A DNA stretch of 64,000 nt from Amphiscolops sp. MND2022 (taxonomy: Eukaryota): positions 54,932,001 through 54,996,000 of the forward strand of contig OZ076410.1 in NCBI GenBank assembly GCA_964187785.1, written 5' to 3'. The notes beneath the pieces were generated by a model. It was not told where the DNA came from. It saw only the letters and a program-made list of their open reading frames with translations, and ran no database searches. Positions 5,632 through 52,000 of the stretch are shown in pieces (position 1 is the first letter of the stretch; each line of letters begins with the position of its first letter). The translations under genes were made by a program, and so were the position numbers.

Positions 5632-5785
5632 ACGAAGCCAACAGTTTCTGGCCATGGAGTCTATTTAAGTATTGCTTTAAAGTATGGAAAATGTAATTTT
5701 GTTTCACACCAACAAGTATAAAACCACTCAACTGCTAAAAAAGCAGAATTAAATGAAGATATGTGAATGTAAAGCACAATCCAGT

Positions 5786-11800: not shown

Positions 11801-13303
11801 ACATGGAAAAACCAATAAACATCCAGGAATAACCAAAATTATCCAGCAATGCTGAGCAAAACACTACTACCCGGTACTAGCACGGAAGATTAGGGCCTGT
11901 ATCATCAACTGCCGTAATTGCATAGCAAACAAACGCATACATATACGGCAAATACGCCCGAAAATGCTTAGCAACGCAGAATTCACATTCGGACCCGAAG
12001 ACTGCTTGGAATTTGACATACTACCGAACCTAGCTTCATCAAACAGCTACAAGCACATGGTTGTCTTCTCCCGATACCTCGTCGCATACCCTACCCAAGA
12101 TATGACAGCCAAGACAGTCGGCCGTTGCATTGTCGACATAATGACACGTCACTGTTACCTCCCAACAGTGGTCCTCACAGATAAGGGGTTTTAATTTCGC
12201 TCGGATGTCGTAAACCAAATATCCCCGACCCTTGACGTACGGATCAGCCACGCATCGACAGAACATGCCCAAACAATAGGGAAAGTTGAAACGACACATG
12301 CATCACTAAAAACGTCCCGAAAAGTATCAACGGGAGAACGACGCTCAATGTGGCATAGATATGTACAAATTGCAGTCATGAACTACAACACGAGATACCA
12401 TGAAAATTTAGGCTGCGAATCGACAACAGAATTTCACGGACGAATTCCGTACAATATCCTGGACATCGAACTGGGGCTTAAGCCAGAATGAAAAAAAAGA
12501 ACACAACGCAGAACGTACGGACGAATTACAGAAACAGATAGCTGATATCCACCAAGCTGCCAAAGACAACCTCATGTAATCCTACTTGAAATACAAGCGA
12601 TACTGTATTAAAGAAGCGACAGCAACGCCATTGAAAGTCAATGACTATTGCTATGTCCTGAATCCGAAGGCTGTAACCAGTCAATGGAAATTGCATTCAA
12701 AGATTGCATTTTGACTGATCCCTACATAGTAGACAAAGTTCTCTACGAAGAACAAGAAGACGTTACACTCGAACCCTCCATAGAATTATAGAATTCGCCT
12801 AAGGCTCTATGCGCCCAATCATCGAGTACCTGAGGTAACAGTCAAAGTGGAAGATCAACTTCTGGATCCTGAGGTTAAAACAACCCATGACGATTGGTAC
12901 GCGCAAGCTTGGGAATCGGAATTCGGAGAAGTTCTTTTTCGGAAACGCATCGGAAAAGTAAAATGAAGAAGCTACAATAACAGAAGTACCCATTGATGAC
13001 GGAATTACAACGGAAAACGGAGCGGTTATAACAATTGCAGATGAAAATTTAGCAGAGATACAAACATCCTCCGGAGATATTACGTCAATCAACTTAGATA
13101 TTAGTGACAAACCCTACATAATGACTCCGCCGCCTATGGCAAGCCCCCCAATACCACCTACTCTGCTGCCTATAGTTGTTGGATATAATCCACGAAAAAC
13201 TGAAAGATACAACTTACGTCCTAACCCTAGACCTATCGCAAACCCAGAGTTTAGGATGCTTGACGCTGTCACTATGGCAGAAGAACCTCAGACTCGAGAC
13301 TGA
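8860..13303 (+). pseudogene. pol: Gypsy-1 pol remnant (PR, RT, RNase H mostly deleted, IN)
   Basis: ELALMHKYGIITTLPFSRYTS, FCKLDCSQAYHCLQMAD, AQNVDDIG, NTAADFLSR, HGKTNKHPG, FDILPNL, TDKG, and C-terminal RYNLRPNP. Confidence 0.88.
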
Positions 13304-22000: not shown

Positions 22001-25000
22001 AGAGAAAGCGGAAAATCGATTATATTGCACTATATCATAACTTTTGACAATATATCAGTAGTAAATTGCATTCTACTAAGGAGAAGGTGATTCGAAACGA
22101 TTGTACAATATCCGAATTTGTTTTTTTTTCTAAGATCAGCTAACTGACCTAATTATATAAGCAGATCGTTAAGTATGGTAAGTATGGTACAATCTAACTG
22201 CCACATGGCTTTCAAGCATACAATGCTAACTTTTTATAAAAAAACTTGGAAAATTGCCGGAGCCTTCTTGAAAAACCTTATATGATTACAGTGCAGCTTC
22301 CACTATTTCAATGGAGCCTGAAAATCTTTCAAACTTTTTCACCGACTCGATCACTTTATTTTCGCACTTCATTTGAAATGGCGGTAAGATTGATAAGGTC
22401 TGCACTACATTTAAAAATAGAACTGAAACATTTTAAAACTTTTTAAATGAATTTTCAGAAACTTTTCATGATACGTAGTGAATTCAGTAAACTATTCGTG
22501 GTAGAACATTAGGACTGTTGTTCAGATAAAATTGTAAAATTTGAAGGCTTAAATTTATAGTCAAACTTAGGATGCTCCTTCCAAGCAGCTTGATAAAAGT
22601 CAATTACAACAGAAAAATATTTTCACATTACGTTTACGTAAGAGTTCTATAGAAACCCGGGTTGACCCTCTTACTAGCATCTTGGCTGTCTTGGCAAGAT
22701 CTTGTCAAATTCTTAGTACATCTTGGCAGCCATGGATCCCATGGCAAGATTCTTATTAAGATCTTACTAAGATAATACTAATTCCAAGATCGTATCTTAT
22801 CACGATGGACAAAATTTTAAGATTAATAAAAAACACTATACCTTCGGTACAAGCAGCCGAGACTCAATCTAAAGGCTCATTTCACCCAACAACGACTATT
22901 TCTACTCGTTTTCATAATCAAAATGCTTAAACCTGCTGAAAAAATTTTGCATGCAAAAATGCGTGAAAAATTACGATAACGTAGTCTGGCTTCAGAAATT
23001 CTGACGAGAATCCTAATAATTCCTCACCTGTTTAAGACTGAAAAATGCCGAATGTACCAAATGAAAGGTGATTTCAAGGGCTTTTCAAAACTTGTAATTT
23101 ATCATTCCTTTCGATTCCAGAGACGGAGAAATATGCTCTCAAACGTCCAGATCCACTATCGGAAAGTTACAAAGGAAAGACCTTAAAATCCTGGAATTTT
23201 GGTAAAAATCAAATTTCCAGCTTTCTTTGAGCCTGTTTAGCAGCCTTATTACTGCTAGAAACGGCGGTCATTGCTCTATTTTGGGTAATGATTCAGCTCA
23301 AGGCTTATCTGACGCCGTTTGTGGCGACAGTTTTGCAATTGAAAAAAAATCGATATCGAAATGGTTGTAAAAATCATTCAGTAATTTTGTTTTGAGTGAT
23401 GTCGACTATTTTTGCATAACTCTTAATTTAATGGTTTTCTGATTCTACTCTTTCTCGATATCGAGCAGTTCGTAGCAATTTTTTTCTTGCCATATTCGGC
23501 TTCTTAGTTAGATTTTTCTTGCCATATTGGGCTTCTTAGTAAGATTTTTCTTGGAAACATGGCTCTCTTGATAAGATCTTACCATGGCATCTTGCAATTC
23601 TTGGCAATATCTTGTCACGATCTTAGCTAAGAATTTTCCAAGATCTTGGCAAGATCTTGCCAAGATCTTACTAAGATATCCATGGAGGGTCGACCCGGGA
23701 AGTCATAATAAAAGTTGCTGGCAACTTTGAAGTGCTTCAAGCAATTTTAACAAGGGAGCTTGATTAAATTTATTTGAACACGTGAAATTGTTAGGCATGG
23801 AAGTTTCATTGAGAGTTCTGTAAAATTATATTAAATTAGCTTGGCGACCTACAAAAAGCAATTTGAACCAAGGAAAATAAAAATGGGTCAAAAATGTAAT
23901 CATTTCCTTGAAATCAAATGGTATTACTTGGATGCTTCAGGAGATTCATATGCTTTCTTTAATCTTGAAATCGGTTTTAATCTTGCTTTCATTCAAAGAT
24001 GATATTGATTAGACTTGTCCTATTGATTGTCCTATTGAATATTGTCATGCCCGCCAAGCATGAAGAAATGAAATAAACTCTAAAACATTAGTTCTTACAT
24101 CAAACTCCCTAAAATATAGATCATCATGTAAATACATTGCAGTAATTTATTAGCTAAATATCACAGTTGGCTATACGACGACTGAAACTAGCAGTCATCA
24201 ATACCAAATTTCGTTTATGTTATGGTGCATCGTTTAAAAGCTAAAACTGAAATATTCAATCATTTCCATATTTACGACTGAAACAATCAGTCATCATCCA
24301 CAGTGATAGTGCATCGTTTAACCGTTCTTTATCCATTTTTTATATTACATGTAAAGTATTACCAGAATATTCAATCATTTCGTTCATTCATATTAGCAAT
24401 TTGTACAATGTCCTGCAGTAATTATCCTCCAAACGATAATCGAATCAGTCACCATGATGATAAGAACACGCGGTAGTGAAGCCTCAGTTTAAAGAGCAAT
24501 TGAGACAATTAAGTGCTAAAATGACTGGTGCTTGCGGTCATACTAAATCAAACACGAACAATTAAACGCCGATCATCACCCGTCATGACTGGAACCACCA
24601 GTCGTCAAGTGCAATTAAATAGTAATTAGCAAGTCGAATGTTATTGGCTGAAAGAGAAAAGGTGCTAACACACCTTGATAGTGACACGGTCGGGTAAAAC
24701 CGAACTCATTAACGAATTGTGACCATTGATATAACCGGTTGCTTACTACCTTGCTTACCAGTCATCAATAGTTGTTATAACATTAAAATACTTCAATTCA
24801 ACTTAAAACTTCAGACTTTTCATGGTAATCACCAGATCTCAAAGTAGTCGAAATAGACAGATTGATACTGAGAACATGGATAGAACTAGTGATAATGAAA
24901 GTGAAACCAGCTTCCCTGAACTCTTGTCTAGAGAACAAATGGTAGACCTTGACTCTGATGACGTTTTAACTAGACGTCAAAATAGTAGTAATTACGACAT

Positions 25001-28000
25001 TGACCGAAGATTTAACGAGATAAATAGGCAAATCGGAGACCTTACAAACATAGTCCTCACGCTAACCAACCAGTTTGCCTCCGTTAATGGAGAAGGGAAT
25101 AGACTGAATCCAGTAACTACTAGTACTGACAGTCGTTCCGACATGGTGACAGGAGTCTCGAATCCACGACCATCAGGATCCCGAACAACACCACCCAACG
25201 GGACACCAAGGAGTGACGAAAGCATGCCGCAAATAGCAGATGTGATGACGGAAATCCACCATCTCCGAAGTACAATGGGGGAAACCTTGACGCACCCAAA
25301 AATTCTGCAGACCCAAGTACCCCTATTCAAGGGAAACCGAGACAAATACAATGAATTCGAGCATTTATTGCTCAACCACTTACGACCACATGCCCACAAA
25401 CTAACCGAAGAACAAAAACTCAACTACTTCCAGAGTCTTCTCAGGGATGATGCAATTGAGTTTTGGCAAACCCTAACAATCACAACAGAAACGACACTGA
25501 GAGATATACTGACGGCATTCAAAAAAGAATACGCAAAGGAAGAACTCTCAGAAGTCTCGAAGTTCAAATTCGACCAACTACGATACGATCCAGCTACTGA
25601 GTCATTCAGTACCTTCCTCGCCAATTACAAAAAGATTGCCAAACAAGCCTATGGCGAAAAAGCACAGGAAATCGTCCAGACTTTCCTATTTGCCAAATTA
25701 CCCATCCAGCTCCAAAACGAACTGGCAATTGCAGGAAAACACAATGCCAGCATTGAAGACATCAAAACATTCGTCCAGAGAAGATGTCAATATGCCCAGT
25801 TACTACCAAACCAACAACTGCTCCAACCGTTCAATCAGGCTATTCAGACGCAAGAAGTCCCGAACAAGCCAGTCACCCAGAAACGAAATGAAACTGATCG
25901 ACCAACAATCAAAAGGAAATTCGACGGCAACTGCAGATACTGTGCGATATACGGACACAAATGGGCAGAATGCCGAAAACGACAGCGAGACGAGGCAGCA
26001 GGTAACAACAACTCCCAGGCACAGAAAAAGCCCGAACAACAGAACAACAACCACGCAGAAACACAACCGAAATACAACGCCAAACTGGTCTGCCAAATCT
26101 GCGGATATACAGGCCATTCTGCAAAAGACTGTAGGCATAGAATACCTCAAACCTCTGCCTACGGAAGTGTGCCCTACAACAGGCAAACCACAACTGAAAA
26201 CAGGGATTTCCGACGTGACTTTAGAAGAGCACACAACAGCCCTTACCCAGCAAATGAAATGAATGACGTTGCACCAGGGGACCAACAACAACAAATCAGT
26301 GATGAATACTACCAACAGGACTTCATTGAACCATCATCTAGCCAGCCAAAAAACTTCTAAAGCCACGTCATTCGACCGACCACTACAATAACAAAGTGCG
26401 CAACACAAACAACTACTACTACACAAAAAACTACAAAAAATGGACAACTGATCTTCGGCAGGATCAGAAACCCATGACTTCAATTACCCACGAGACAACC
26501 AACAACGAAGCGAACTCCCCATCCGAACCAACGGATGTGAAATTACAACCGACAGAAGACGGACAGCACTCTAACTTGACTACGACGACTGACTGTACAA
26601 AGAAAACAACAAACCGAAAGAAGGACGTGGCGATCCAGGTGTTAACAGCAACACTTCAGTTAAACAAAAAGGACAAGATGTTATACGTCCCATTGCAATT
26701 CAGAGCATACGAAAACCATGGACTCCTCGACACGGGAGCAATAAGAAGTGCCATGTCAGAAGACGAACTCAGACGAATCCTGTCTGCACACCCAGCTGCA
26801 CTCCTTGAGGAATACCCAGCACCGGACTTCAAAGTCCAAATTGCCAATGGGAGTATCGTCCCAGTCCGGAAACAGGTATTGCTCCGCTTTTTCATCGGTG
26901 GTAAAGTATTCGAGGAAACCTTTATGATTTTACCAACCATGGGCAACATCTTGATCGGAATGTCCTTCTTCAAGAAATACTCAGTGACGCTTGACCTTGC
27001 CAATAACGTAGTCAAATTCCCAGACATTACCCTGCAACTTAAACCAGAAAGAGGACGATACAAAGTCCAGATGCTCGAACTACGTACATCGCAAAAAATA
27101 GTGGTACAACCGGATCACCAAATCATGGTCCCTGTCATAGCAGAAAAGGACCTCGGGACAATCCAGGGCACTGTAGAAACCTTTCCAGCCTTTGAAAGAA
27201 AGACCCAACTACTAGTGTCCCCCGCCTTAACACAAATCACTGAGATGAAAAGCCATGTCCAGATCACCAACCTTACCTGCCACACAATCACCCTTAACCC
27301 GAACACAACGGTGGCCACATTCAGAATAATGACCCCCAACCAGGCAAAGAACCTACAACCGATGTCAAACGAACAATTGACACTGATCACCAAATACCCA
27401 GACGAAGCTGATAATGTACTAAACCAGCTGTTCCAAGAGCCTGGCACCGAAACCAACCGTCGATGGTACCCAACACCGGAGACCTGTGACGACCCGTCCA
27501 AGTTGAACCGCATTGAAAGACGGATATACGACGAAATCACTAAACTCCGTGAAGAAGAAAAACTGGACCCAACAGCAGACGATAAACAACGCCAGGAGTT
27601 CCTTGCCAGCTTCAAATGGGAAAACTCAATCCTGGATGAGCACGAACGACAACAGATTGAGAACCTCCTTGTGAAGTATAACAATGTGTTCGCCAGACAC
27701 CGCCTTGACATAGGCATCAATACCGATTTCAAAATTAAACTTACCCCGAAGCATGATGAGCCAGTTTACGCACAGAGTTTGCCCACACCCACAAATCTCA
27801 AAGACGACCTGCTCGTCGAACTAGCGCTGATGCAAGAGTACGGGATAATCACGACGTTGCCATACAGCAAGTATTCCTCACCAATATTTGCTCAACGCAA
27901 ACCCAATGGGAAACTTCGCATTCTTGTAGACCTGCGCAGAATCAACCACCTTTTGAAAAATGATTACAACCAACATAATCATCCAGTCACCACCATCGCC

Positions 28001-31000
28001 GACGCCGCCCAGCACATGGCAGGGAAGAAGTATTTCTGCAAGCTGGACTGTTCGCAGGCGTACCACTGTTTGCAGATGGCGGACGAACAATCCATACAAC
28101 TCTTGGCATTTAATTTTGGAAGTCGAACCTTTGCTTATCTACGACTGGCACAAGGACTCAATCGATCCCTATCAGCATTCAACAGCACGGTGCGAGAATA
28201 CGTCGACGCACTGGTGAAAGCGGATAAATGTGCCCAATATGTCGACGACATTGGGATTGCTGCCCACACTGTAGATGAGCTACTGTCAAACATTGAAGCT
28301 GTGTTCCAACAAATCCAAAAAGCAGGACTGAAATTGTCGATGTCAAAATGTGCGTTTGGCCACCCACAGATCGACTTCCTCGGAAGAAGCATCACATCAA
28401 AGGGTGTTGCCCCACTCGAAGACAAGATAGACAACTTCCTCAAGAAGATCAAATTGCCCACATCAGTCAAATCCCTCCAAAGGTACATCGGGTTCGTCCA
28501 GTTCTACAGGCAGTACATACCACGCCTAGCAGAAAAACTCACCCCACTGTACAAACTACTTCAAAAAGACGTCAAATTCCAGCTGACCCAGCAGCAAAAG
28601 GACATTATCTTCGAGATTAATGAAAACCTTGCCAAAGCCGCGAAACTTTCGCTGCGTCTGCCGTTACCCGATAAACAGCTTGTTATAATGTGTGACGCCA
28701 GCGAGCATGCGGCAGGATATGTCCTCCTGATAGAAGACTACACCGAAACTAACGACGGACCAATGAAGACGTACGCACCAGTATCATTTGGATCCCAACG
28801 ATTCACGGAGGGCCAAATGTCACTTACTATGTATGCAAAAGAATTCCTGGCAATGCATTTTGCATTCGACGAATTTGCACACATACTCTGGGGTGTCAAG
28901 AAACCAACAATCGTAATGACGGACAATAAAGCACTAACCCGTTTCTTCCAGTCCAAACGAATTCCACCGAAGCTATGGAATTACTGCGATCAGACGCTTC
29001 AATTTGAATTCGTACTTGCCCATGTTCCCGGAACCGAGAATCCTGCTGCAGACTACCTGTCTCGTCTAGACATACGACCGGAGGAGAGAATCCACCTCAA
29101 ACTCAACGACGAGATACCAGTCTTCCACGTCGAGATCGATCTGGCGTCACGAACACCGAAGCAGGACGAAGAAGAAGAAGAATACATACCTGATGACCAA
29201 CAAACCACCACCACCAAACAAAATGAAGCCATCAACGCCATACTGGACCAGGTCCCCATATGCAGTGACGAATCGAGTGGACAGTTTCGCGAGAGGATTG
29301 AAACCATCCGTCATCAGATCACACCCATCATCACAGGGCAGCATGACGAGATGACGTTCACCCGATTCAGGCGAAAGCTTCATGACAACGTGGTAAACCA
29401 GGTATGCCCCAATGGGGAGTTTCAAATCATCCAGGACCAAGCCGTAAACCTTGACATCCAACGCATGATTAGAATTTTGAACCAAAAGGAAACCCTTCCT
29501 AATCATGTGAACTTTGAAAGTCAGTTTTTCCAAAAACTAGTTAAAAACAAGAAAAGACTTGAAGTAGTGAACAACGTTTTGTACAGGAACTTTTTCGATG
29601 GTACAGGTAAAATTAAGTGTAAACAAATTGTCACCCCCTCTGAAACCATTCGGAAAATCATTCAATCCCTGCATGATGACCCTCTGCAAGGTCACCCTGG
29701 CTGTAACAAAATGCTCCACGAACTGCGTAAAAGGTACTACTCACCAAACCTCTCTGAACTGGTACTGCAATACGTCTCGAACTGCCAGGACTGCATCCGC
29801 TCAAAACCAATCCGGAAAGCTGAAATCACACCACCACTCCAACAAATATACGACCCCTGCAACGGACCAGAAGACATACTAGAAATCGATTTAGTCGGTG
29901 AACTCCCACCTTCCAACGGATTCACACACATCCTCACTGCATGCGACTACTTTTCTAGGTACCTCTTCGCAATACCAATCCGTAAACCGGACACGAAGTC
30001 GGTCGTCGAAGCACTCATGCAAATCTTCACGCAGCACTCGTATGTACCCAAAACAATCTTAACTGACAAAGGAACGACATTCACATCTCAACTACTCACC
30101 GCTCTGATGGAGTCTGCCGGTATAAAAATCGAACACGCCTCTGTAAAGCACGCACAAACGATTGGGATGGTTGAACGTTCACACCAAAAACTAAAACAAA
30201 TTCTCAAAATCAACGTCTCAGCCGATTCACCACAATGGCACAAATACGTAAACATGGCCGTGATGGCCCATAACACAACCTACCACCAGGCTATCCGATG
30301 CACACCCACTGAAGTTTTCCACGGACGCATTCCGTTCAATGCTCTTGACGTCAAATTTGGCCATCCATTAACTGAACAACGCAACACCACTGACGTCACT
30401 GGAATACTAGATAACATGAACAAAAAATTCCAACAAACACATGACAACATAATCGAAGCCTTCCACAAATACAAGAATTACTACGACCGAAAAGCGCAAG
30501 CTTCACCTCTGAAAGTAAATGATTTCACCTTTCTGCTAAACAAAAGACTGTCTCAACAATCTGACAAAATTCCTTTCAAAGAATTCAAGTGGGAAGGCCC
30601 GTACAAAGTGGTAAAAGTCTTGTCCAATTCAAATTACATTATACGTAAGATTGGAACTCTTCGCACCCAATGCGTCCACAGAATGAGGCTCCGCCCATTT
30701 ACACCAAACGCACCAATTGAAGACATTCAAGACGATACATCACAATACTATGAGGATCCTGACGCCCTCAACGAGCAGGAGTTGTTCGACAACCACCTAC
30801 CCGATCACGTCCACGAACAACCACAACAAGCAATACCTGAACAATCGGACTTCGAAGAACTACATGCTGACCATGGAATGATATACTATGAACGCCATAG
30901 CCTAGAACCTGATCAAAACATTTCCATACCTGAAAGCCGAGCTGAAACACAAGAACCACAACCGGATAATGTTAGCATGAACAATTCCGAACGCCAAACA

Positions 31001-34000
31001 AACGACTGCCCTCCAGCGACATCGCGAAACACCATGTCTCGATACGGGCTCAGACACAACCCAAAACCTACCACGTACCCCGATTTCCTAATGCACGAAT
31101 TACATGGAACGCCTTCGCTTCAACAGCTGCTTCTGAAAAACAGAAACCTATAAAAACACCCACCCATAATCACACTTATTAAACCAATGACTGCTAACAA
31201 CAGTCACCAACAGCCTTTCTATCTGACCGTAAAGGTAATTGTTTTACAATTACACCCTAGTACACCAAGCATCCAGCAAACAATAGTGAAAGCTCTGAAC
31301 AACCTAGCAAACACTTCAATAAACGACCGTTCACTTCCGTCGTCGCTGTGTAAACTATCTAATCTATCAGCACCAATTGTTAGCGAAACAACCAAATAGT
31401 AAAGTAACGACTGCACAAGCCTATCATTCCAACACTCGCGGTCCGGAAGTACATGTAACGCGCAAAAGTGTGAACGATAATTTATTCAATTCGCACCAAA
31501 TTTACTACATCCACAACCGGAACTAAAGCAATTTGCTTAGCAAAATCTTGATGCATAACTAACGAAACGTGAACGAAAACAACGTTCCCTACAAACGCAA
31601 CAAACTAACAATGATGATCTGCTGCCTGGCAAACGTTAGGACAACATAACCAATACCCCACCTATCTCGCTTTAGACACATAGTTCTGGCTGTGTGGGTG
31701 CGTCGTCAAAAGCGTGCTTGTGTGGTTGGTCATACATACAGATGAAGGTTGCTCTTTAGCAACTGGATTCAGTGTTAGTTTTGTATAGGTGGTTCCGACG
31801 GGAATTCACCTTTCCCAATGAACTGAACATTTAAACTGAAAACTAATCACCAGAAACTAACAGAACGCCGGTACGAACAAGAACTTACCAACTCCCGAAA
31901 ACAATGATCGCCCGGCCCCTTACACGTAACCTAGGATGCGAAGGCTTTGCCTCTTTAGGGAAAAGAGTAAGGAGTACGCGGCCCCAAAAAGCTACTTAAC
32001 GAGGAAACCTAAACATGTCCATCCTTCCCAGCCTAACAACTTGGTACCACTGCAGTTAACATAACGTAAGAACTCGCGATCTTGACGACACACATCACGT
32101 GTGATGACGTCCCAGGACACACATCAACGATGATGACGTCGCAAACATAGACCGCTGCATGTAATAAATCGAAACACCAACATACATGTAAAGTAGTCCC
32201 TAGAACTTATAACACGTAACACTTACATGCATACCTAATAAGTCATGTATCAAGCCAAGGATCCACCCCTTGGGAATTCAGCCTTGGAAATGAGCGAGCT
32301 GCTCAGTCACGTACCTCGCGGCGCGGTGCTAAGGACCGAAAGCCACAGTCATCCTGTCTCGTTACCATTCTCGAGCATTCACGAACAACGAAGAGGAGGA
32401 CTTGACTTTCGAGTACCATGCACAGCACAGCTTGGCGCGTGAACAATTTTTATGTCGGTGGTTACCGCGGTGACCACCATAACCATCATGAACTTGCTGG
32501 AAAAATTCACTTAAGACGACGCAACAAATAGAGCGAAACACCGCATGAAACTATAGTCAAGGTATGGGTAACCCCATACAACCACCCAAGAACGATAGAG
32601 GTAGTTTAGCATCATGGACACATAGATACTCCAAAAACACGCGAAGAAGAAACCGTTTAAAACAACCCTAGATTTCACGCACTACAGAAAAACAAATCGT
32701 TCCTAGACTACATTACACCAACGAAGAAAAAATGACGAGTACATGCAGTCAGACTGAACACTACAACATGCAAAAATTCATTTTTTTTCCCTACATGCAA
32801 CAAACCGCTAATAACGCCCTAACTGCCCAGTACTACAGAAAAACAGAGAAAAGTTTTGGACGGCAGAAACCATCTAACTAAATTACTACATCATGTAAGA
32901 CCAACTCAGGCCATAATAAAACACAGCATAACATCAAAACACAATATCAATATGTAATCAACATGTAAAAAGTTCTGCAAACAAATTAGCAAGCCAAGTA
33001 GCAAAATCTGATTACTGCGACAAACCTGGAAGATAACTAATACTCTTTGGAACGACTACCATCTTCCTCATCACTGCTCTCCTCTAACGTGAAAGAACGC
33101 CCGCCAGCCGACTCAGGTTCAGTTTCAACAGTAGCTAATGTACGTTTTCCTTTCTTGCCTGGTTTCCCTCCCGTTCTCTGACCACGATTGCTTCCAGACG
33201 TCTTACAGGCAGATTTACGTTTTGAAGCTGAAGTACTCGGGCCCTCTGTTGGTAACACGACTTCAGCCTGCAACTTAGGCGCTTGCGACACAGAAAGCCT
33301 TGCTCGCCCAGGACTCCGATGAAGAGCAATTGGGCTCGAATCCATTGTGCGCAACTGATCACACACTATAGACCTATAATTGTCGACAACAGGACGAGCT
33401 GGGAGACCACCAGTCGATTCCAGAACACCCAGGCAGCGATCCAGTAGTTCATCAATACCCCTCTTGACCAGCTGGTCCCAGGGAATAGCCCTTGCTACAT
33501 CGGACAGACGAGAAACCTGCATGTCAGTATTATTGCAGTGCCTGACAAATCCAATCATAGAGCGGCGTGAATGCCCACTAAACCCACTTGACATCCAGCT
33601 CCGAACTATGTGAAGACTGGACAACATGATGCCATCACTAAGAGCAGTGTTTCCCACATCCTGGAAATTGGCGACATATGGGTCATGAAGCATCCCCACA
33701 AACAGAATCTCCATTATGCCCTGGAATTCCTGGCACCGGTCCCACGAAGGGTATGACAACCACAAGGACACGGCGTCGTCAATGACCGGCACCCCCGAGA
33801 CACTGGACTCCCAACGGCGCTGAAAATAGGTGACCACTTCCCGATATTGTTGAATGACGATGGCCCCCTGGTCTCCACTGCAAAGATCACCGAAGCTTAA
33901 CACCGAGAGCGTACCCACGAGTATGTCCGTCAAGCGATCCATGGACATCAGCTGAATCGCATGAGGATCCAACGGCAATAAGCTCAGATGCTTCACCCAC

Positions 34001-37000
34001 CCCTGATCATAGTCGCAGATGCACATTTCACAGATAGCCCTCAGGAAATTTTGTACTTCTTTGTAGAAGAACGACTTTTGACTGACAACGTCGAACCGGA
34101 AGTACTGACCAAACAACACTTCAAATCGGGCTTTGTTCACTGGCTCACTCTCTCCCAGTCGCATCTTCAGTACGGCAAGTACCTCGAAATCGGGTGGTAT
34201 TGTTGCAGACTCGACCACTAGAGACAATAACTCCCGAAGGAAAGCAGCCAGCTCACGCTCAAACCATAGGTTCCGATCCCGCCCAGCAGAACACAAACGG
34301 GGACACTTGGCAACAACTGAAACATACAGATGATCCCTGACCAACATGTTGAAACACTCAACAACACACCCTACCAGCCCGAACGTCCTAACTCCCTCAC
34401 AATCCACTCATCAACCACATAGCAGAAAGGAAAAATAACCATAGAGTGGATGTACTCGGACACAGAAATAAGCACAGCATTTATACTGACCTGTCTCAGC
34501 GAGAAACTTCAACACTGCGAACCGCGGCCTGGACATGGCATCACTGAAGACCTGCGTCTCCATACTTGCAATATTGCGGGTCTCAGAAACTGTCTGCGAA
34601 CGGTGACCACCAAAGTATGCCCCGAGATCGTCCCACCGATCCACAATTTCCGTGCACAGAACTGCTAACTCCCGGAAACATGCAGCACCACCACGAACGA
34701 ACTAAAACAAAACAGCATAAAATTATATACAGTGCATGACTAAAAGCCTCCACACCCAAGCGTACCAGTCATCACAAACGAGGAAAACACATACACACCA
34801 GACCAACCCACCCCCAACCAGAATGACTAAATACTGCTTGAATTACCTCTCGAAGTCTGGGCATATTGTCGAAGGATGACTCTCCGATGACTGCAGAAAG
34901 CCGGAACCGAAAATATTCCAAAACGCAGAAGGGTTCAAGTCCACTCAAGTGCTGCAGAAAAGTACGGCGAAGCAAGTCCCTCAACCAGACCACATCCAGA
35001 CGACGAGTCACTACAGGCATGATCGGATGTGCAATGCTCGCCAATGCCCGCCCAAGACGCAGATTCTCGCCTACGCTAATCGCACATAAACCAGCATGCG
35101 ACTCCACACAAGCCAGAACGGAGACAAGAATCCTCAGCAGGGTTTGTTCCCACTCAGCGCCACCAGGAATCGCAACCAGAACCACAACCTTGATAGTCAC
35201 AGAGGCGAAGATGTGACAGTCCACACGCTTCAATGGCCCATCAGTGCGGACATGTAAGCCAAACCGCACCCCAGAAGAGAGAAGATCACTGACTTTCTCG
35301 ACAACGAACGGATAGAGACCGTATAACACGAGACTCTGCAACAAAACGAAAACCATGTCACTCACCACATAGTAAAGCATATTTTGTTCAAAATAAGACA
35401 AACCCATTATCCAACTACGTACAAACACCACGAGACACAGGCATACCAATAGCAACTTCAAACAAAAAAAAAAAAAAGACAAAATGATAAAAAAGGTATT
35501 ACCTGACATTTCGGGTAAGATAGCGCCCTCTCAGCGAACACCAGCTCTCCCCGCATACTGCTGACCCATGACTCCATGGCTCGGACCACACTTGGAAACG
35601 TTTGAAGCTCGACGAAATTGCTTATGAAACAACAGAGCCAGAGGTACGAAGCACTAGACTCCGATAACTCGGGCTTAGCTCCTGCAGCCTCCTCCTCGCG
35701 CTCTATCGCAATTCTCTCCTCCACTGTCAGTTTCACATCAGATTCTAGGATGACAGGCGGCTCTGATACTCTCGCGGCGCGAATCCTCCTATCCTCCTCC
35801 AAGGACACAGGCCTGCAGGACTTGTCCAACAAAGGCATATTGGACATGATCCGAAAACGCTGCTCAAGCCGGGTGTGCTCACGTCCCTTCCAATGGTCCC
35901 ACAAGTTGTGCAGACCACGTCCGGCAATACTGAGATCGACGCGGCACAGACGACATCTTGCATAACCATCGACCACCCGTTTGTTCCGGGGGAAACCAAC
36001 GAAGGTCCCCACTACCCCAGACACAAAAAACGAAGGCTTGAGAGTCTTAACAGCACGCTTCCGACCTGCTAAAACACACAACACCACATGTAAAACTTCA
36101 AAAAAAAAAAAAAAAAAAAAAAAAACTGCGTTTGTCACCAACTATTAGTAGTATGTTGTATATAATTAGTCCTACCCTACCACTAAAACCCCCCACATGA
36201 TCTTTTGAGAGTTCTTACCAGGCTTTGATGTGGAGGCAACAGCACACGATGTCCCCCCAGAAGGCACAACACTTCTCTCACCAAACTCAGAGGGAACACC
36301 CGACTCTGATGGCGCACGACGATCTTCTCCACCAAAGAGGCTTCCGGCCACAGAACGTGGGAGAGATGGCACATCATCACTCCGGGAAGCAACGGGAGCG
36401 TGACGCAGATCTTGTATTGCCTCTTTCAGCTTACTTAAGAACTCCTCCACAGCAAGGGCACCCACTGTCCCCAGTTGGCCGAGGCGGGACTCTACTGCAG
36501 CTTTCACCCAATGCTGTATCTCTTTCTCCACACGACGGAACAATTCAGCGAATTGCCCCTCGACGACCTCAGCTCTGATGTTTGCATCTGCAAAGTTATC
36601 CACAACTCACAGAACTTACCTTGGACTCAATGCCTGAAGACCCCTATCATCAATTTATTATAGAACAGCAAACCACACACGGCGTGCAATTGGTACTTTG
36701 GACAAAAGCCCCCCCCCTACGAATAACCTAGATTATAATGCTAACAACAAATAACTGGGTAACAGCTAATAGCCTTTGATACCAGAAAAATGTGAATAAA
36801 CCTACCCATATGAGATGACAGAAAGGCATCTAGACGATGAAGGATGGACGCCGAATCTATTCCTGGACTCCCAACAGTCCCAGCAGCAACCGAAGCACGA
36901 TACCGACGTAAATAGTCGGTCACGTCTGACATGTTGACATCGGCTACAAGAACGCAATACCCTTAGTTACAAGATTATGACCAAACACTCCCTAACACTA

Positions 37001-40000
37001 CAGGCACTATCTTGGGCAGACGACAAACTGATGATATTACCGCTTACTCACACTAAAAGCAAAATACGAGAGCCACACTTACCGAATTCCTGGGACAAGA
37101 CGACGTCCAATAAATCGCCCAAACCAGCAATGTTTAATGATGATACGCGAGTTGCAAACTGGCAACATTGACTTGTCTCCAACATAAGATCGGGCAAATT
37201 CAGCCCGCCTCCACCTAGCTCAGCCCCCTGCATGGCCATCTGATCTTCAACTTCAGTAACCATCTCCTCCAATTCGGGCCCGAACGACTGATTTGCCTCA
37301 TCTTCCAACATGCTGGCTCACAATATAATTAAACTCCAACGTTCCAAGGGAATAATAACAGGCACACAGGACACGACTGCAAAAGCTCATTCTTCCATTT
37401 CTTGTTGTTATAGACTGATCACCTATCTCAATACACAATGGATACCCAACCTCCCTATCAAACAGTTTTACCCGCGTACCACTGGATATTCAAGGAACCA
37501 TATTTTGGATCTACCTCCGTCAAATTTCAAATGCTATTCACACGAAGCAGAAAAAAAAGCAGTCGTGGTTCCTCACCAAAAAAGCCTAGTATCCTTCCCC
37601 ATTCCCTCTTCATAAAAGTACAATCAACACCCGACAAAATACCAGACTTCCTGGGAAAAACCCATAGATAGCAATATTGATATTATTGTGGAAGAATGAG
37701 CAAAACCAACGGTTGCCAAACGAAGGTGAATGATTTCAAGTTTGAACAGGCTCAAATTCTCTCCAAATATAACAACAATACTCAACTGACTTTCACTATG
37801 GTAACGCAACAAATCAATCAACTGCCGATGATCGATGAAAAGTTGCTTAAACAAACATTCCACTATATGCGCACCACACGGATGACGTGGCTGACCGACA
37901 GTTACTATAAATAAACCCCAACTTCCGACTGCATATTATTTGCCTGCCTCGACTTGGCCATTCACGCTTCCGAATAGCTCTCAACCGCTTCATTTGCAAC
38001 CCACGCGTTTTCCATCTACCTTGCATTGCCACTTCAGCCGCTGTTCAATTCTCAACTTAACCACCTGCTACCACTCACCTCAGTCATTCACCTTTCCTAC
38101 TACCCCTACAGCTCACTCTCTCTCAAAAAGGGGGGGAATGTCATGCCCGCCAAGCATGAAGAAATGAAATAAACTCTAAAACATTAGTTCTTACATCAAA
38201 CTCCCTAAAATATAGATCATCATGTAAATACATTGCAGTAATTTATTAGCTAAATATCACAGTTGGCTATACGACGACTGAAACTAGCAGTCATCAATAC
38301 CAAATTTCGTTTATGTTATGGTGCATCGTTTAAAAGCTAAAACTGAAATATTCAATCATTTCCATATTTACGACTGAAACAATCAGTCATCATCCACAGT
38401 GATAGTGCATCGTTTAACCGTTCTTTATCCATTTTTTATATTACATGTAAAGTATTACCAGAATATTCAATCATTTCGTTCATTCATATTAGCAATTTGT
38501 ACAATGTCCTGCAGTAATTATCCTCCAAACGATAATCGAATCAGTCACCATGATGATAAGAACACGCGGTAGTGAAGCCTCAGTTTAAAGAGCAATTGAG
38601 ACAATTAAGTGCTAAAATGACTGGTGCTTGCGGTCATACTAAATCAAACACGAACAATTAAACGCCGATCATCACCCGTCATGACTGGAACCACCAGTCG
38701 TCAAGTGCAATTAAATAGTAATTAGCAAGTCGAATGTTATTGGCTGAAAGAGAAAAGGTGCTAACACACCTTGATAGTGACACGGTCGGGTAAAACCGAA
38801 CTCATTAACGAATTGTGACCATTGATATAACCGGTTGCTTACTACCTTGCTTACCAGTCATCAATAGTTGTTATAACATTAAAATACTTCAATTCAACTT
38901 AAAACTTCAGACTTTTCATGGTAATCACCAGATCTCAAAGTAGTCGAAATAGACAGATTGATACTGAGAACATGGATAGAACTAGTGATAATGAAAGTGA
39001 AACCAGCTTCCCTGAACTCTTGTCTAGAGAACAAATGGTAGACCTTGACTCTGATGACGTTTTAACTAGACGTCAAAATAGTAGTAATTACGACATTGAC
39101 CGAAGATTTAACGAGATAAATAGGCAAATCGGAGACCTTACAAACATAGTCCTCACGCTAACCAACCAGTTTGCCTCCGTTAATGGAGAAGGGAATAGAC
39201 TGAATCCAGTAACTACTAGTACTGACAGTCGTTCCGACAAATATCTTTCCCATTCGTTTTGTGCTCACATGAAACGTATGAATCAACTGTTTCCAATTGA
39301 TTGCATTTGAAACTAGATCCATTATTAAGGACCTTTTCTCAGTTGCAACATATTTTGAGCCAACAGGTGTCAAATTGGGCAGCTAACCTTACCTCCTAAA
39401 ACATCACTTCAAGTGGCCTACTAGAGAAGCCCTGGAAACAGTAAGATTAAATATTTCACTCTTCAAAAGTTTCTAGTTATTATAATTCCTGAGAATATTT
39501 TGAAGCCACTACTTGTTCAAAACAAAAGTTATATTTTTGTTAGATGGCACAAGAGGGTACGAACGTTATCACACTGACCAACTTAGAAATGATTTTTCAC
39601 GTCACTTTGAACTTACCAACACAAGGAGCTCTTGAACCTTTAGTCTTCACGCAAATTTCACTGTCCAGAGGAGCAGAACTATTGAAGGTTTCGCGGCACT
39701 CATCAACGTCAATCTCGGTCAATGTAACTTGCTGCAACAATCATCCATTGATGAAACACTTAAAATGACCAATTGGTGAAGAATTCCAAACGTCATGCTA
39801 ATCGAAAAGAAAATTAATGAGGGTTGATTATTAATTTCCGCCCATGTTTCAATTTCAGAATACAAAGTACTTATGTCTTCTTTTTTTTCTGATTCTGTCA
39901 TGTTCTATTTTGATATTCAAAAGAAACGGGTTCTTCCACAGAATTCAACTAACCGAAAATTAGTTTCGTAGCATATGTAGTGTGAAGATGTTTTAATTTT

Positions 40001-46000: not shown

Positions 46001-49000
46001 CTATTCATCAATGCTCGAGAGTTTTCTCCTGAAACCTTTTCTCACTGCTATCGAGTAGCTCCTCGAGAGATCTTTGGATTGTTGAAGTGATCATTATTGT
46101 CGACTTTTCAATCGAAAATGTGTTGCGCGGGGATTTGCAGGAGCCTTGGATTGGATTGAAGACGTTGTCAATGTTCGACACTGTGTCATGGCTGGTAAGG
46201 TGACTTTTTCAGAGCTGCGAAGTCGCCGCTGAGGTTGTTGCCGTCTGGGACATCATTCGCGAGTACCTCCGGTATACGGGTTCTCGTCATATCAAGAACG
46301 CATTTGATATGATAGATATGATCAGTTGCTTCCCTTTTCTTATGTAGTAGCCATGATTTGTATTTGTAGGATTGCTTATCTATTTTTCCCTTGCGTTGCT
46401 ATTTATTCCTTTCGCTGTATCTGTTTTAGCTGCGAGGGACGGATTGGCTGGTGAACAATTGCGGTGTGGTTGGGGGTTCTGCTTCACGTCTTTACTTTGC
46501 GTCAGTCATTTGCGTTCGGTTGATGTAGTTTCTTTTTTGTAGCGACTTTCCAGGCACTTTGTCTCCGACAGTCGGTGTTTGGACGATTCGTTAATAGGGC
46601 GTAGTTTGAGTTATTTGATTTTGAGCCGTGTTTTGTGTTCACAATACTGCATCTTCAAAGAGCAAAGAGCTGGACGAGACGATATCTCTGGATTTTGTCT
46701 GAGGGGTTCACAGTTTCTGTCCCGAGATGCTAGTAGAATCAGATGATCAGCACATCTTCCAATTGTATTCGCAGTTGCGTCGTGTTCGGGAGAGGACTGG
46801 TTGCCCTCAATGAAATGACGCTCGGTCCCATTTGGAGGAATTCACAACCTTCGTTTTTGATGTTCCTGATCGGCATAGTGGATCTTGTCGCCGCGATGAA
46901 GAGATTGGGGACATTGTGACAAATTTGTTGACTGACTACAGTTTTACGCACCGTAGAGACTTGAGCCGCGTTTTGTAACTGTGTTGTCTCGTCGTGGTGT
47001 CGTCCTCCTAAAAAATTCCAGATATCGATTTTGATTTAAGAAGTTGTGACGTTCCTGCTGCAGTGGTATCTTCGTCTTCGAGAGGTGTGCTGAGTCTCGT
47101 CTCTTCTGCGAATTACAATTTGTACGAAATTCAATGAACTTGTACGAACTTTGAAATAGGGAGCTTTCTTCACTCAGGGTGCAATGGAGAGCGTGCGTGA
47201 TGCGATTTCTTCTAGTCGCGAAATAATGACGTTTTCTGTTGACCCTGTGAGAGTGTTTGTTGTTACAGGCGACCTGATTTCCTTGCTGTGGCTTTTGATA
47301 GTTATCTGTATTGGACAAGAAAGAGGCTGATGGGCGTTTTCATGAGGCGACTTGTCAATCACGACATGTTCCTTTCCCTGATCCTGGAGAATCAGTTGTG
47401 TTTGGATCAAGTTGTTACCCTAAGGCAACTTTGTTGCCAGCTTCTCTTTTCGTCTTTTCTTCGCCTGTGGCTGAGGCTAGTGTGTGTGATAGTTCCAGTT
47501 CGTCAAAGCGTCGCAAAAAGTCTCCGAGGTCTACTTTGTGTGCAGGTTTGGGTCTGAAAAAGAGAGTGAGAAGAATACTGTTGTGGAGGGTGGGAAGACA
47601 AACTTGAAGAGAGATGCGAAGAAAGATGTTCAGAAGGATCCGAAAAGGACCCGAAGAACTGGGCGAAGGCGACTGGTAGTAAGTCTGAATCTGGTTCCAT
47701 GAACAAATAAAACGATGTTTGTTGTGTGCTGAAACAAATTGGTCCTTTTCTATCATCTGCTTTTTGTATTTATCGCTGCTGTCCGTTTGGCAGTTTTCTG
47801 TCATTCAGTTCCAATAATCAAGGAGGCGTTATATGTGTATGTATATATAACAAAAAAAACGGTTTAGAAGAGTCGTAAAAAAGAGTAAATGAAAAAACAA
47901 TAAAATGCCTTTAATTGCAAAATTGTCGGAGAGGTTCTGTCTGAACTTCTAATTATGTCTTCTCTCTATTGAGTCGTAGTCATAGCGTCACGTCGTCTGA
48001 AGTCAAGATCAGCGTTACGTTTAATATTGGGTCGTAAGTTAAATTTCGCTAATTTTCTCGGATTATATCCAATGATTGTAGGCTGTGGCATGGGGGGTAT
48101 AGGCGGCCGTCAAATGAGCGGGGGATTCGTATGAAAGGTAAGAATTATCCCCCACGATAGTAGTAAGGTTTGAAAAACCCGCGGACGACGGTTCAGTAAC
48201 ATTTGTTCCGCCGTGGTTTCTTGTACGTCTGTTTCTGTATCTGCAGTTGGAAATGTGGTTGTATTTTGGTCAATCTGGTTACCGAAAATCGTTTCCCAGG
48301 ATGTGGCGTATCATTCGTTGTGCGAAATTGTGACGTCTGGATCCGGTAGATTTTGGTTGTTTGACTGTGCCGTCAGGCACACCTTGCTCTGGTTTGCTCT
48401 GGTATATAAGATAGGTTTCTCATTCGATGTAGTGTTTGACCATACCATATACCGTGTTCCGGTCCTTCGCACAGTATAATTGTTATTCGATAGGACTTTT
48501 ACCAGTATGTACAGTACTGTCCAAATGCCGTTCTGGAATGCGAAAATCGACAATTGATTATAAGCCCTCTGATTTAGGGTTTAGCAGTAGTCTATCATTT
48601 TGAGCGGCGCAAATGACACTTTACGGTCGTAGTTTCTTTTTTATTTGAGATAGGACAGCATGATGTTGTCCTTCAATGACGCTCGTACTTCGTCGATTTG
48701 TTTTTGCAATTGCTCTGCTACATCTGAGCTGGGAGTGATTTTTCGTTTGGGTTTCAATCCCAATTATAGGTCAAGCACATTATAAGATAAGCGTCCATGA
48801 AAGACAGTGGACGGTTCCCATCCCAGTGTTCCATGGTATGTGTTATTCTACTTCATCACTGCACTTTGTACGTTCTCCCGTTGAAAATTTAGGTGATTCT
48901 TTTATGGAAGCGTGAGTTCTTTCGAGTATTCCAGTTGTTTGGGCATGCTTTGTCGACGCGTGGCCTGATTGAATGTCTATGGTTACTGCTGATTCAGCTA

Positions 49001-52000
49001 CGACTTCCGATTGAAATTGAAAGCTCTTTTCTGATAAGATGAGCGTTGGTAAACATGCGTATCTCGTCATGAACACGATGATTCATCGTCAAATTCTCTT
49101 GGCTGTTACGTTTTGTGTCGGATATGCAAATCAATAAAATCAATATCGCGAGACGTTTATCTTCGTGAAGACCATTTGAAATCTCGCAGAACTCGGTATG
49201 TTTGGTAGTATGTAGACTGCTAGTACTCCGGCCCGAGCGCGTGTTCGGTTTTGTTGATCATTTTCGGTCGGATCTGTACGTTGTCATATGTTTTGTAGGT
49301 CATGAATTCTTCACAGCTCACAACTCACTGTTTGATTTGTTTTGTTAATCCTGAATAGTAGTATTTTGAGCGGCATTCTTGGATCATCTTGGTGATTCCT
49401 GGGTGTTTTTCATTGCCATAGTATTGCTCGTAGTAACTTTTCGCATAGGTTTTCAGGTATTTGTATTTGGTGATGCATCGTTTTCCGCATAGTCATAATA
49501 CTTGCGTATTTATATGCTGTCTTTTACTGCTAGTCTGTCTTCATGCGCTAGTAATCGTTTGGCCTCTCGTCGGTTTTTAGTATGTCAATCTCTTCGCATA
49601 TTAGTTTTTGTTTGACTGCTTGGAATACATGATCAGCATCCTGGTTGACTCTAATGTGTTTTTGTTGATTGGTATGGACGTAGTCTTTTTCATTGTAAGT
49701 TTGATTTTAGTTGCCTCTTCGTCGGGCGCCCTCTGTTTTGCTTGTTCCTTATGTGAAATTTTTTCTTCATTCTCCACTATTTTTGGAACCAAAAACTAGC
49801 TGTTCTTCTGCTATGTCAGTAGATACCATGTTGACTTGTATTAATCGATTTGCTGTATCTTCTCGTAACTTGAGTTTGACCTTTTTTTGGATTTACTTCA
49901 ATCCTTGAAAAGAAATCTGCTGCCGTATTTTGCGCCCCATCGACGTGCATTACTTGGAAGTTGAATTGCATTACGTAGTCACATGCGTTTCGTAGTGTGG
50001 GTGACATCGCTTTTGAATGGAAAAAAATGCGACTGACCTATTGTCGGTCAAGTAAGGCTTTGGTAGTGTCGTTTTTGACAATACATGGCTCTACTCTAAG
50101 GAAGCGCAGTATATTGCTAAAAAACTTCAACAAAATTTGAACATTTTAATTGAGCTGGAAAAACCTTTTGATCCCAAAGCAATTGGCGCGAAAGGTGTTT
50201 CTTTGAATTCAGTCTTTTCTTGTTTTTCCTCGATCATTGCGCATATTCCGGCACTAGGATGTATTGAGAGCCAAACCGCAAGTTTCTGTTAGCGCTGCGT
50301 CGATCGCTTTCTAGTTGGCGGGCAGTTCCATTGGAATCCAAGCAATTTTCCAGAGAGACCGGGGATGCAGTTGCAGTATTTGTTGACAAATCCGAAATTT
50401 CTTTGAACTTGCTTTTTTGATTTGTGAAATTGCACAATTGTCAAAAATTTTAGGAGTTTTTCAATCTTCGAGGGAAACTTGTTGTGTAGGTGATTGTTCT
50501 GCTAAAAATATCTACCTCTGTAAATCCAAAAAGGTAATTTTCAATAGTCAATTGCAGGACTGTTCTCCTCGTGCATTCGAACACGGCACGTATGTTACGT
50601 ATTAGCTGCGTCGTTGTGTTGTCGGCTATTCCAATACCGTCGACATAAGGTGCACATTGAACTGCTGTAACCACCTGATCTAGGTACTCTTGCACACACT
50701 GGGGAATGCAGATTGTGAACAATCCAATTTGCAAAGTAGCAATTGCCCGCTAGATGCTGCGCTGCATCGGATAGGGTGATAACTGGAAGGTTTTTGTTTT
50801 TAAAATCGGCTGAGTTTAGTGCTTTGATTTTTCGCAGGTCAACAAGTACGCGCATTTTTCCGTTTGATTTGCGATGTGCCAATCTTGGGCTGGCGTATTT
50901 AGAGAATGACAAGGTTGTTATAATGCCAAACCTGTGCATTGCAAGGTATTTGAACTGTTAGACATCTTTCAAGTTGATTGGTACTGGTAGGTTTTGCGTG
51001 TAGACTGGGGTTCATCTTTTGGGGTTAATGTTACTTTGAAGTTGTTATTGATGCCAATATCCAGTCTGTGTCGGGCGAAAATGTCTCCATCTTTGACGAT
51101 AGTTTCCTCGAGTTGTTCTTTGTCTGTGCCCGAGATTAAGGATCTTTCCCATTTGAAAATGTCCATAAATGTTTGGCAAGATTCGGCCATTCTTTTGGGG
51201 TTAAGTCCTTCTTTTCTGATGAGTTGCCTTATTTCCTTGAGTATGCGTCGCTGTATAGGCGTGTGTTTGTCTTCGTTGCCCGGGTATTCTGGTGTGGAAA
51301 CCAGAAATCCTTCTCATTCCGGTTGCCCCCTCCAGCCTTCATGAGGTCCATCACGTTTATGTGTGTGTTAAAGTATTTTAAGGGCGGCTGCGTCGATCGG
51401 ACGTCTTTGTTTTGTGCCCTATTGTGGAGTCCCGGCTTTTTTGTTTGGCTTTTCATGGTGTAGGGGAAATCTGTTGTTCTGGACATTCGAAGGTGGATGT
51501 GTTTGTCTGTAGCTGTGGCCAACGCTGGTTTTACAATTATTTTTGCTGTTTTGTCGAATTGGGGTAGTGGTAGCACTGCTACTGTGATGGCGTTTGCGCT
51601 GTTTGTAATAAGTTTTGCAGGAGACGGTCGTTGTTTGGTTGGGGGTTTTGTTTGATTCCATTCAGCTAATATCTGGAGAGGTTTTGGGTTGCAACGTTTC
51701 ATTTCGTCCGTCATTGTCATCATTATGTCGACGTGTGGGAACTTTTTTGTTCCGTTGGCTGTATCTAGGACAACTTGGCCGGTCCGCGTGAAGCTTAGGA
51801 CAATTATTGGGCAAGAGGTTGTTGAAAATATCACGATCGTATCCATGATCGTATATTAACCGATGTGACTTTCATATCGGCAGTGAAGATGCGTTGTTCT
51901 AGTTGTGCGTTGGCGCACTCAATTTCAAACGGTGATTGTGGCTATTTTTTGATAACGATGTTATCGCAGTTGACTTTGATCATGGTAAAGTCAGACCATG

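Follow-up and report, generated by a model that had tools for sequence, protein, structure and literature searches.

An intact Ty3/Gypsy-type LTR retrotransposon carries a seven-exon antisense gene with six predicted introns

We found that an intact, recently inserted Ty3/Gypsy-type LTR retrotransposon carries on its opposite strand a genuine gene of seven exons, with predicted splicing, for a 1,092-residue orphan protein, and that related elements have kept this protein and its six introns under purifying selection. The DNA analyzed, referred to here as the window, was a stretch of 64,000 nucleotides that contained no N. A sequence-only reading of the window had proposed that seven minus-strand ORF pieces join into a single frame inside an LTR retrotransposon, and this observation was confirmed. 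Its interpretation, that the element encodes a regulator expressed from its own mRNA, was supported only in part. The gene is protein-coding, antisense to gag-pol, and carried and copied with the element, but its expression and its role as a regulator remain inferences from sequence alone.

The carrier element occupies positions 24043-39239 (15.2 kb) of the window. Its 5' LTR (24043-25143, plus strand) and 3' LTR (38139-39239, plus strand) are 100% identical over 1,101 bp, have TG..CA ends, and are flanked by copies of a 5-bp target-site duplication, AATAT, at 24038-24042 and 39240-39244. A primer-binding-site-like sequence, assigned from sequence only and starting with TGG, directly follows the 5' LTR (25144-25161, plus strand), and a polypurine tract lies next to the 3' LTR (38125-38138, plus strand). 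The gag ORF (24822-26360, plus strand) encodes 512 aa with two CCHC knuckles, gave weak Pfam hits to DUF1759 and Retrotrans_gag, and has its first ATG inside the 5' LTR. The pol open frame (26342-31153, plus strand) is in the -1 frame relative to gag, which it overlaps by 19 nt across an A_AAA_AAC heptamer. Its domain order is PR-RT-RNaseH-INT, with a weak protease-like domain at residues 108-194, RVT_1 at 501-663, RT_RNaseH at 758-866, Integrase_H2C2 at 1081-1138 and rve at 1157-1249; the RT_RNaseH and Integrase_H2C2 domains are Gypsy-type.

The antisense gene lies between pol and the 3' LTR, and runs on the minus strand from its ATG at 37311 to its TAG at 33037. Its exons are located at 37311-37083 (exon 1), 36943-36806 (exon 2), 36587-36219 (exon 3), 36065-35503 (exon 4), 35335-34847 (exon 5), 34701-34491 (exon 6) and 34316-33037 (exon 7, including the stop codon). 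Together they sum to 3,279 nt, or 1,092 codons plus TAG, with phases 0,1,1,1,0,0,1 and no internal stop. The six introns, on the same strand, are located at 36944-37082 (139 nt), 36588-36805 (218 nt), 36066-36218 (153 nt), 35336-35502 (167 nt), 34702-34846 (145 nt) and 34317-34490 (174 nt). All of them are GT..AG introns that begin GT[A/C]AG/GTAAT-type and end in a pyrimidine-rich tract plus AG, and intron 3 contains a 26-nt T run on the gene strand. An in-frame TGA was found 9 nt upstream of the ATG. At the composition of this strand, a stop is expected about once in 22 codons, so that 1,092 open codons are far beyond chance.

To determine whether this structure is conserved, we compared the window with related loci, here numbered L001 to L011, all of which come from unannotated metagenome assemblies, most of them from a single assembly. 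Diverged subfamilies, and contigs from three other metagenome assemblies, keep the same exon layout. The window and L001 are 99.5% identical but have different flanks and different target-site duplications, showing that independent insertions both hold all six introns. The same antisense layout next to pol occurs in L001 and L003-L009, including L004, which has 98%-identical LTRs and a pol that is only 58-73% identical; L003, L004 and L009 are decayed copies. GT and AG sit at the same codon positions in L002, L003, L004, L005, L010 and L011, although intron sequence changes and intron length varies from 118 to 219 nt. Homology in ORF translations stops exactly at the exon 4 boundaries. Exon 4 is the most conserved exon (62-90% amino acid identity between subfamilies), and exon 5 aligns without gaps in 7 lineages down to 23% identity. 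All copies with an open pol (the window, L001 and L005-L008) have all seven exons open.

Purifying selection and splice-site conservation among copies had been set beforehand as a test of the gene model, and the outcome was positive. Non-synonymous divergence (pN) was 0.12-0.43, whereas synonymous sites were saturated (pS 0.62-0.84), and dN/dS was about 0.10 for the window versus L003. Exons were more conserved than introns, with 76% against 59% identity for L003 and 68% against 58% for L005. The third-position composition of the gene (A.16, C.21, G.32, T.31) is the complement of that of pol (A.32, C.33, G.19, T.17), while the host flanks are symmetric, which indicates long residence in the element. 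The gene region is the most diverged block of a mosaic family, and its tree disagrees with that of pol, so the region recombines.

We next looked for relatives of the protein, working exon by exon in every search and prediction. Pfam searches of every exon at E values up to 10 gave only sub-threshold zf-BED and chance hits, and NCBIfam gave nothing. Protein searches returned only unnamed, ORF-sized ENA calls of at most 497 aa, and no longer or named cellular protein matched exon 7 among 1.84 billion representatives. Searches of PDB sequences with the exon 4 and exon 7 profiles and with the finger piece gave nothing meaningful. AlphaFold2 models of exon 7 (pLDDT 57.9) and exon 4 (pLDDT 61.8) were poor outside of one confidently predicted all-helical domain in exon 7 (33700-34272, minus strand; exon 7 residues about 15-205; pLDDT about 75-93), and Foldseek searches against PDB and BFVD gave no match at E<=0.001. 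In exon 7, this domain is followed by a low-confidence tail with a basic patch and then an acidic patch, while exon 1 encodes an acidic N-terminus (pI 4.1). The only lead was a C-x2-C-x16-H-x5-H motif in exon 4 (35875-35955, minus strand), preceded by conserved aromatic residues and resembling a BED-type zinc finger (PF02892). Its four putative metal ligands are conserved among 30 homologs (C37 in 29, C40 in 28, H57 in 28 and H63 in 29), and zf-BED was the only Pfam family hit repeatedly by family members (7 of 30). However, every score was below the gathering threshold (12.8-15.4 bits against 20.6; best E 0.0061 among the 30 homologs), and no solved BED structure was retrieved by sequence or fold.

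These results show that a clade of Ty3/Gypsy-type LTR retrotransposons carries, between pol and the 3' LTR and on the opposite strand, a seven-exon gene for a protein of about 1,090 aa. We also regard the following as established: the element is copied through its plus-strand RNA, on which the six introns read as their reverse complement and cannot be spliced, so that every new copy inherits the gene with its introns; the protein has been under purifying selection across lineages with saturated synonymous sites; and the gene region recombines between lineages. The remaining steps are inferred. After integration, a promoter in the conserved 0.8-kb block between the polypurine tract and the ATG, or in the 3' LTR, would drive minus-strand transcription, and the host spliceosome would then remove the six introns. 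The product is probably nuclear and DNA-binding, given its acidic N-terminus, the BED-like finger in the most conserved exon, its helical domains and its basic C-terminal patch. We infer that it acts in trans on the transcription, chromatin state or target choice of the element family, as an accessory factor rather than as a structural or enzymatic replication protein. We assign this overall reading a probability of roughly 0.6. A more far-reaching and tentative possibility is that a clade of non-plant Ty3/Gypsy elements encodes its own intron-bearing, DNA-binding accessory protein of a previously undescribed family, which lineages exchange as a unit while selection preserves the protein, as expected for a factor that controls the transcription, chromatin state or target choice of the element in conflict with host silencing. 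If so, it would be a retrotransposon counterpart of retroviral accessory genes with a full host-like gene architecture. The sequence-only reading also took the element to be from an animal, but scans of the rest of the window with Rfam, tRNA and Pfam models gave no host marker, with no rRNA, tRNA, Rfam hit or named protein that identifies the organism, and a search with pol returned no named hit.

Other explanations were considered. It is possible, although unlikely, that a host gene was captured at the DNA level and simply hitch-hikes, with any selection reflecting a host function or a relic of one and the protein doing nothing for the element. Retention of the introns suggests that the gene was probably acquired as genomic DNA rather than as spliced RNA, and L002 holds exons 2-7 with no pol within 10 kb. 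However, L002 also carries LTR-like and spacer-like pieces and an inverted fragment of another copy, so it looks like a rearranged element, and no copy was found outside of a retrotransposon context. In addition, synonymous-site composition has equilibrated to the strand bias of the element, purifying selection is seen between multi-copy element lineages, the gene is open wherever pol is open, and no longer or named cellular protein matched exon 7 among 1.84 billion representatives. Less likely still is a nested second mobile element, such as a BED-finger DNA transposon, that inserted into an ancestral Gypsy element and has been co-propagated, the protein being a transposase or a relic of one. 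BED fingers are typical of hAT transposases and there is a weak zf-BED hit, but no terminal inverted repeats or internal duplication bracket the gene, no DDE/RNase H, hAT-dimerisation or other transposase family was found in Pfam, Foldseek matched no solved transposase, and other Gypsy elements in the window lack the gene. Similarly improbable is that the antisense transcript matters only as RNA, through dsRNA or small-RNA production that dampens the element. Antisense transcription as a regulatory layer is discussed for plant elements (PMC7264820), but an incidental frame would not keep 1,092 codons open in several lineages, hold pN far below a saturated pS, or keep exons collinear without gaps down to 23% identity; an RNA-level role in addition to the protein is not excluded. 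A chance arrangement of ORF pieces and splice-like dinucleotides, which has nothing in its favor beyond the absence of expression data, is refuted by the comparative data.

The closest described cases are the antisense additional ORFs between pol and the 3' LTR of plant Ty3/Gypsy Tat-lineage elements, namely maize Grande gene23, rice RIRE2 and Silene/angiosperm Retand with the TRP28 or PMD domain (PMC7264820, PMC11963269, PMC4408406). These share the position and orientation of the present gene in a Ty3/Gypsy element with a long pol-to-3'-LTR region, are present in most copies of a lineage, and have no known function, although a nuclear or DNA-binding regulatory role has been suggested. In contrast, they are described as plain ORFs, and the word intron is absent from the two papers on antisense ORFs (PMC7264820, PMC11963269), whereas the gene described here has six conserved spliceosomal introns, as predicted from sequence, and a 1,092-aa predicted product. 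No match to TRP28 (PF04195) or PMD was found in any exon. Sequence relatives of the present family were found only in metagenome assemblies, and one of the four assemblies that hold it is a marine biofilm. The sequence-only reading had also named the HBZ-type antisense genes of deltaretroviruses, which are protein-coding genes on the minus strand of an LTR retroelement, with an mRNA that is spliced by the host and a plus-strand genomic RNA that carries the gene unspliced (cited in PMC11963269). Those genes are short, with one intron and a bZIP domain, and are transcribed from the 3' LTR, while in the present gene there are six introns, whose splicing is predicted and conserved, and no bZIP or other Pfam domain above threshold. 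The claim of novelty in the sequence-only reading fits the literature, in that our searches, in an incomplete library, found no spliced antisense gene in a non-plant LTR retrotransposon.

LTR retrotransposons are usually treated as gag-pol machines with an occasional env-like gene. Antisense extra ORFs are known almost only from plants, and their function has been an open question for twenty years. The present gene, with a complete host-like architecture that has demonstrably been copied with its introns, and with clear signatures of long-term selection and of exchange between lineages, offers a clean natural case of how antisense orientation protects introns through an RNA intermediate, as well as a well-defined orphan protein family in which the accessory-gene question becomes testable by expression and structure data. 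It also warns that ORF-based transposon annotation, and prokaryote-style gene calls on metagenomes, will miss such genes, since each exon had been called as a separate unnamed protein.

Finally, we examined the non-coding regions that flank the gene. The block upstream of the ATG (37312-38124, minus strand), a candidate promoter and 5' UTR, is conserved at 88% mean column identity among three subfamilies and contains a shared CACGTCA motif. It is possible that this block instead serves the plus-strand RNA or cDNA. No TATA box was found by pattern, and upstream ATGs are numerous if transcription starts far upstream. A possible 5'-UTR intron, suggested by a CAAG|GTA donor and a TTGCAG acceptor shared upstream of the ATG in three subfamilies, was not supported in the diverged L004 and remains speculation. 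No canonical AATAAA lies within 1.5 kb downstream of the stop codon, and only AATGAA occurs, at +255. The spacer between the pol stop and the stop of the antisense gene (31154-33036), the presumed 3' UTR of the antisense gene, holds two 28-nt repeats with CACGTG and TGACGTC motifs.

The seven minus-strand pieces described in the sequence-only reading are present exactly as it described them, at 37311-37083, 36943-36806, 36587-36219, 36065-35503, 35335-34847, 34701-34491 and 34316-33037 of the window, and its observation is confirmed. Together they add up to 3,279 nt, or 1,092 codons plus TAG, with matching phases and no internal stop. The six introns are 139, 218, 153, 167, 145 and 174 nt long, and each begins with a good donor (GTAAGT, GTAGGT, GTAAGA, GTAATA, GTAATT and GTCAGT) and ends in a pyrimidine-rich tract plus AG. 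Intron 3 contains a 26-nt homopolymer at 36100-36125 (A on the plus strand, T on the gene strand), and a similar A-rich run lies in intron 4 at 35454-35484. An in-frame TGA is located 9 nt upstream of the ATG. Given the composition of this strand, a stop codon is expected about every 22 codons, so that the open frame is not a chance product. The window contains no N runs, and nothing in it or in the loci retrieved for comparison looked human.

The gene resides in a complete LTR retrotransposon at 24043-39239. Its LTRs are 1,101 bp long and 100% identical, have TG..CA ends and are flanked by the 5-bp duplication AATAT. A TGG-initiated, primer-binding-site-like sequence follows the 5' LTR, and a polypurine tract precedes the 3' LTR. 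On the plus strand, gag (24822-26360) encodes 512 aa with two CCHC knuckles. Its first ATG, at 24822, lies inside the 5' LTR, 322 nt before its end, and the same ATG in the 3' LTR therefore opens a 130-aa ORF (38918-39310) that runs into the flanking DNA. The pol frame is open from 26342 to 31153, in the -1 frame relative to gag, and its domain order is PR-RT-RNaseH-INT with Gypsy-type Pfam domains. The gag and pol frames overlap by 19 nt (26342-26360), with an A_AAA_AAC heptamer in the gag frame, which is the classical arrangement for -1 ribosomal frameshifting. In the window copy, gag, pol and the antisense gene are all unbroken.

To determine whether this is a real gene, we searched exon 7 and exon 4 separately against sequence collections. 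They found 34 and 112 relatives, respectively, in a word-indexed collection and 127 cluster representatives in an exhaustive HMMER scan, all of which are unnamed, exon-sized ORF calls from ENA metagenome assemblies. We then examined the genomic context of a subset of these relatives, here designated L001 to L014. L001 belongs to the same subfamily (99.5% identical) but is inserted at a different site with a different duplication, GCTAT. The element has therefore transposed with all six introns in place. L003 has exon 7 at 77% and pol at about 90% identity, L005-L009 are five insertions with exon 7 at 68% and pol at 97.7%, and L004 has exon 7 at 40% and pol at 58-73%, with its own 98%-identical LTRs. 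All of these loci carry the gene antisense to pol, between pol and the 3' LTR. In L002 (assembly ERZ25074608, contig ctg185869), exons 2-7 of a 50%-diverged gene copy occur with no pol within 10 kb, next to an inverted fragment of another copy and LTR-like and spacer-like pieces, and this locus is a rearranged or non-autonomous derivative. L010, L012 and L013 (assembly ERZ1742291), L011 (a marine biofilm metagenome, SAMN08714533, PMC6355793) and L014 (ERZ27264286) show that the family exists in three more assemblies.

Comparison of these loci supported the exon-intron structure. In L002, L003, L004, L005, L010 and L011 the exon boundaries fall at the same codon positions, and every intron that could be placed has GT..AG, while intron lengths range from 118 to 219 nt. 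One L003 boundary could not be placed, because that decayed copy is broken in exon 4. In an alignment of 30 ORF translations, homology begins and ends exactly at the exon 4 splice sites, and exon 5 aligns without a single gap in seven lineages, down to 23% identity. Exons are more conserved than introns, at 76% against 59% for the window versus L003 and 68% against 58% for the window versus L005.

We next tested for selection on the protein. Counted exon by exon and summed, non-synonymous differences per site are 0.12-0.43, whereas synonymous differences are 0.62-0.84, which is saturated; for the closest pair, dN/dS is about 0.10. Every copy with an open pol (the window copy, L001 and L005-L008) has all seven exons open. 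The copies with a broken pol are L003 (four pieces, two stops), L009 (two pieces, two stops) and L004 (two pieces, two stops). L003 and L009 also have frameshifts in exon 4, while in L004 exons 1-3 were only partly matched or not matched by the window's peptides.

The base composition of the gene indicates long residence in the element. Its third codon positions (A.16, C.21, G.32, T.31 on its own strand) are the complement of those of pol (A.32, C.33, G.19, T.17), whereas the flanking host DNA is strand-symmetric. Thus, the silent sites of the gene have equilibrated to the strand-specific bias of the element, which argues against a recent capture. Identity between the window and L005 is about 100% at 29043-31543, 88-95% in the rest of pol, 81-83% in gag, 52-72% across the antisense gene and 85% upstream of it. 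For the same pair, pS in pol runs from 0.00 to 0.45 in blocks, while it is 0.64 in gag and 0.81 in the antisense gene. The nearly identical block of about 2.5 kb covers the 3' half of pol and the start of the pol-to-gene spacer, in two subfamilies that differ by 30-40% elsewhere, and indicates very recent recombination between lineages. In addition, the window's pol is closest to L005, but its antisense gene is closest to L003. The family is therefore a recombinant mosaic, of which the antisense gene region is the most anciently diverged block.

To ask what the protein might be, we queried the exons singly against domain and structure databases; only composition and substitution counts were summed over exons. 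No exon reached any Pfam or NCBIfam threshold. The only recurrent hit was zf-BED in exon 4, with an E value of 0.019 for a 66-aa piece and hits in 7 of 30 homologs at a best E value of 0.0061. The motif, C-x2-C-x16-H-x5-H, has its four ligands conserved in 28-29 of 30 homologs. Exon 1 is acidic (pI 4.1), exon 4 is basic (pI 9.3), and the C-terminal tail has a basic patch followed by an acidic patch. No convincing membrane segment was seen. AlphaFold2 predicted a confident all-helical domain for exon 7 residues of about 15-205 and little else, and Foldseek and PDB sequence searches found no relative. No inverted repeats bracket the gene. The protein is an orphan, with a probable metal-binding and possibly DNA-binding finger.

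Our results show that the gene is inherited with its introns through retrotransposition and that the protein is under selection. In retroelements of this type the genomic RNA is the plus strand, so that minus-strand introns are never presented to the spliceosome in the right sense. The remainder of the model is inferred from sequence alone: minus-strand transcription would start from the strongly conserved 0.8-kb block upstream of the ATG, the host would splice the transcript, and the product would be a nuclear DNA-binding accessory factor acting on the element family. The upstream block has 88% mean column identity among three subfamilies, well above the gene's own nucleotide identity between subfamilies (52-78% in 500-nt steps). 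However, no canonical poly(A) signal was found within 1.5 kb and no TATA box was found, and the conserved block could equally serve the plus-strand RNA. The interpretation offered in the sequence-only reading, an element-encoded regulator expressed from its own mRNA, is thus supported in part: the gene is real, element-borne and under selection, while its expression and its role as a regulator remain inferences. Candidate regulatory sites include a CACGTCA motif, at about 37885 on the minus strand, that is shared by the upstream blocks of the window, L003, L005 and the diverged L004, and two tandem 28-nt repeats containing CACGTG and TGACGTC motifs in the pol-to-gene spacer (32087-32143).

Antisense extra ORFs between pol and the 3' LTR are a recognised feature of plant Tat-lineage Ty3/Gypsy elements, namely Grande, RIRE2, and Retand with TRP28 or PMD domains. 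Their function is still unknown, and a nuclear regulatory role has been suggested (PMC7264820, PMC11963269, PMC4408406). Neither of the two papers on those antisense ORFs (PMC7264820, PMC11963269) uses the word 'intron'. Deltaretroviral antisense genes are spliced, but they are short and of the bZIP type, and no bZIP domain was found here. Our literature searches, which covered an incomplete library, found no description of a multi-intron antisense gene in a non-plant LTR retrotransposon; that the present host is an animal remains an assumption of the sequence-only reading.

The two other Gypsy-type elements in the window have no homolog of the gene. One is an older LTR retrotransposon at 5785-17017, with 2.1-kb LTRs (5785-7865 and 14949-17017) that are 87% identical and decayed Gypsy-type pol pieces on the plus strand. 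The other consists of remnants of a third Gypsy-type pol at 48455-51295 on the minus strand, in several pieces that are 25-54% identical to the pol studied here, and the surrounding 44-54 kb shows the opposite strand skew. Finally, direct repeats at 82-86% identity, about 5.7 and 4.9 kb apart, were observed at 56429-57690 and 62147-62589, and these may be LTRs of another element.
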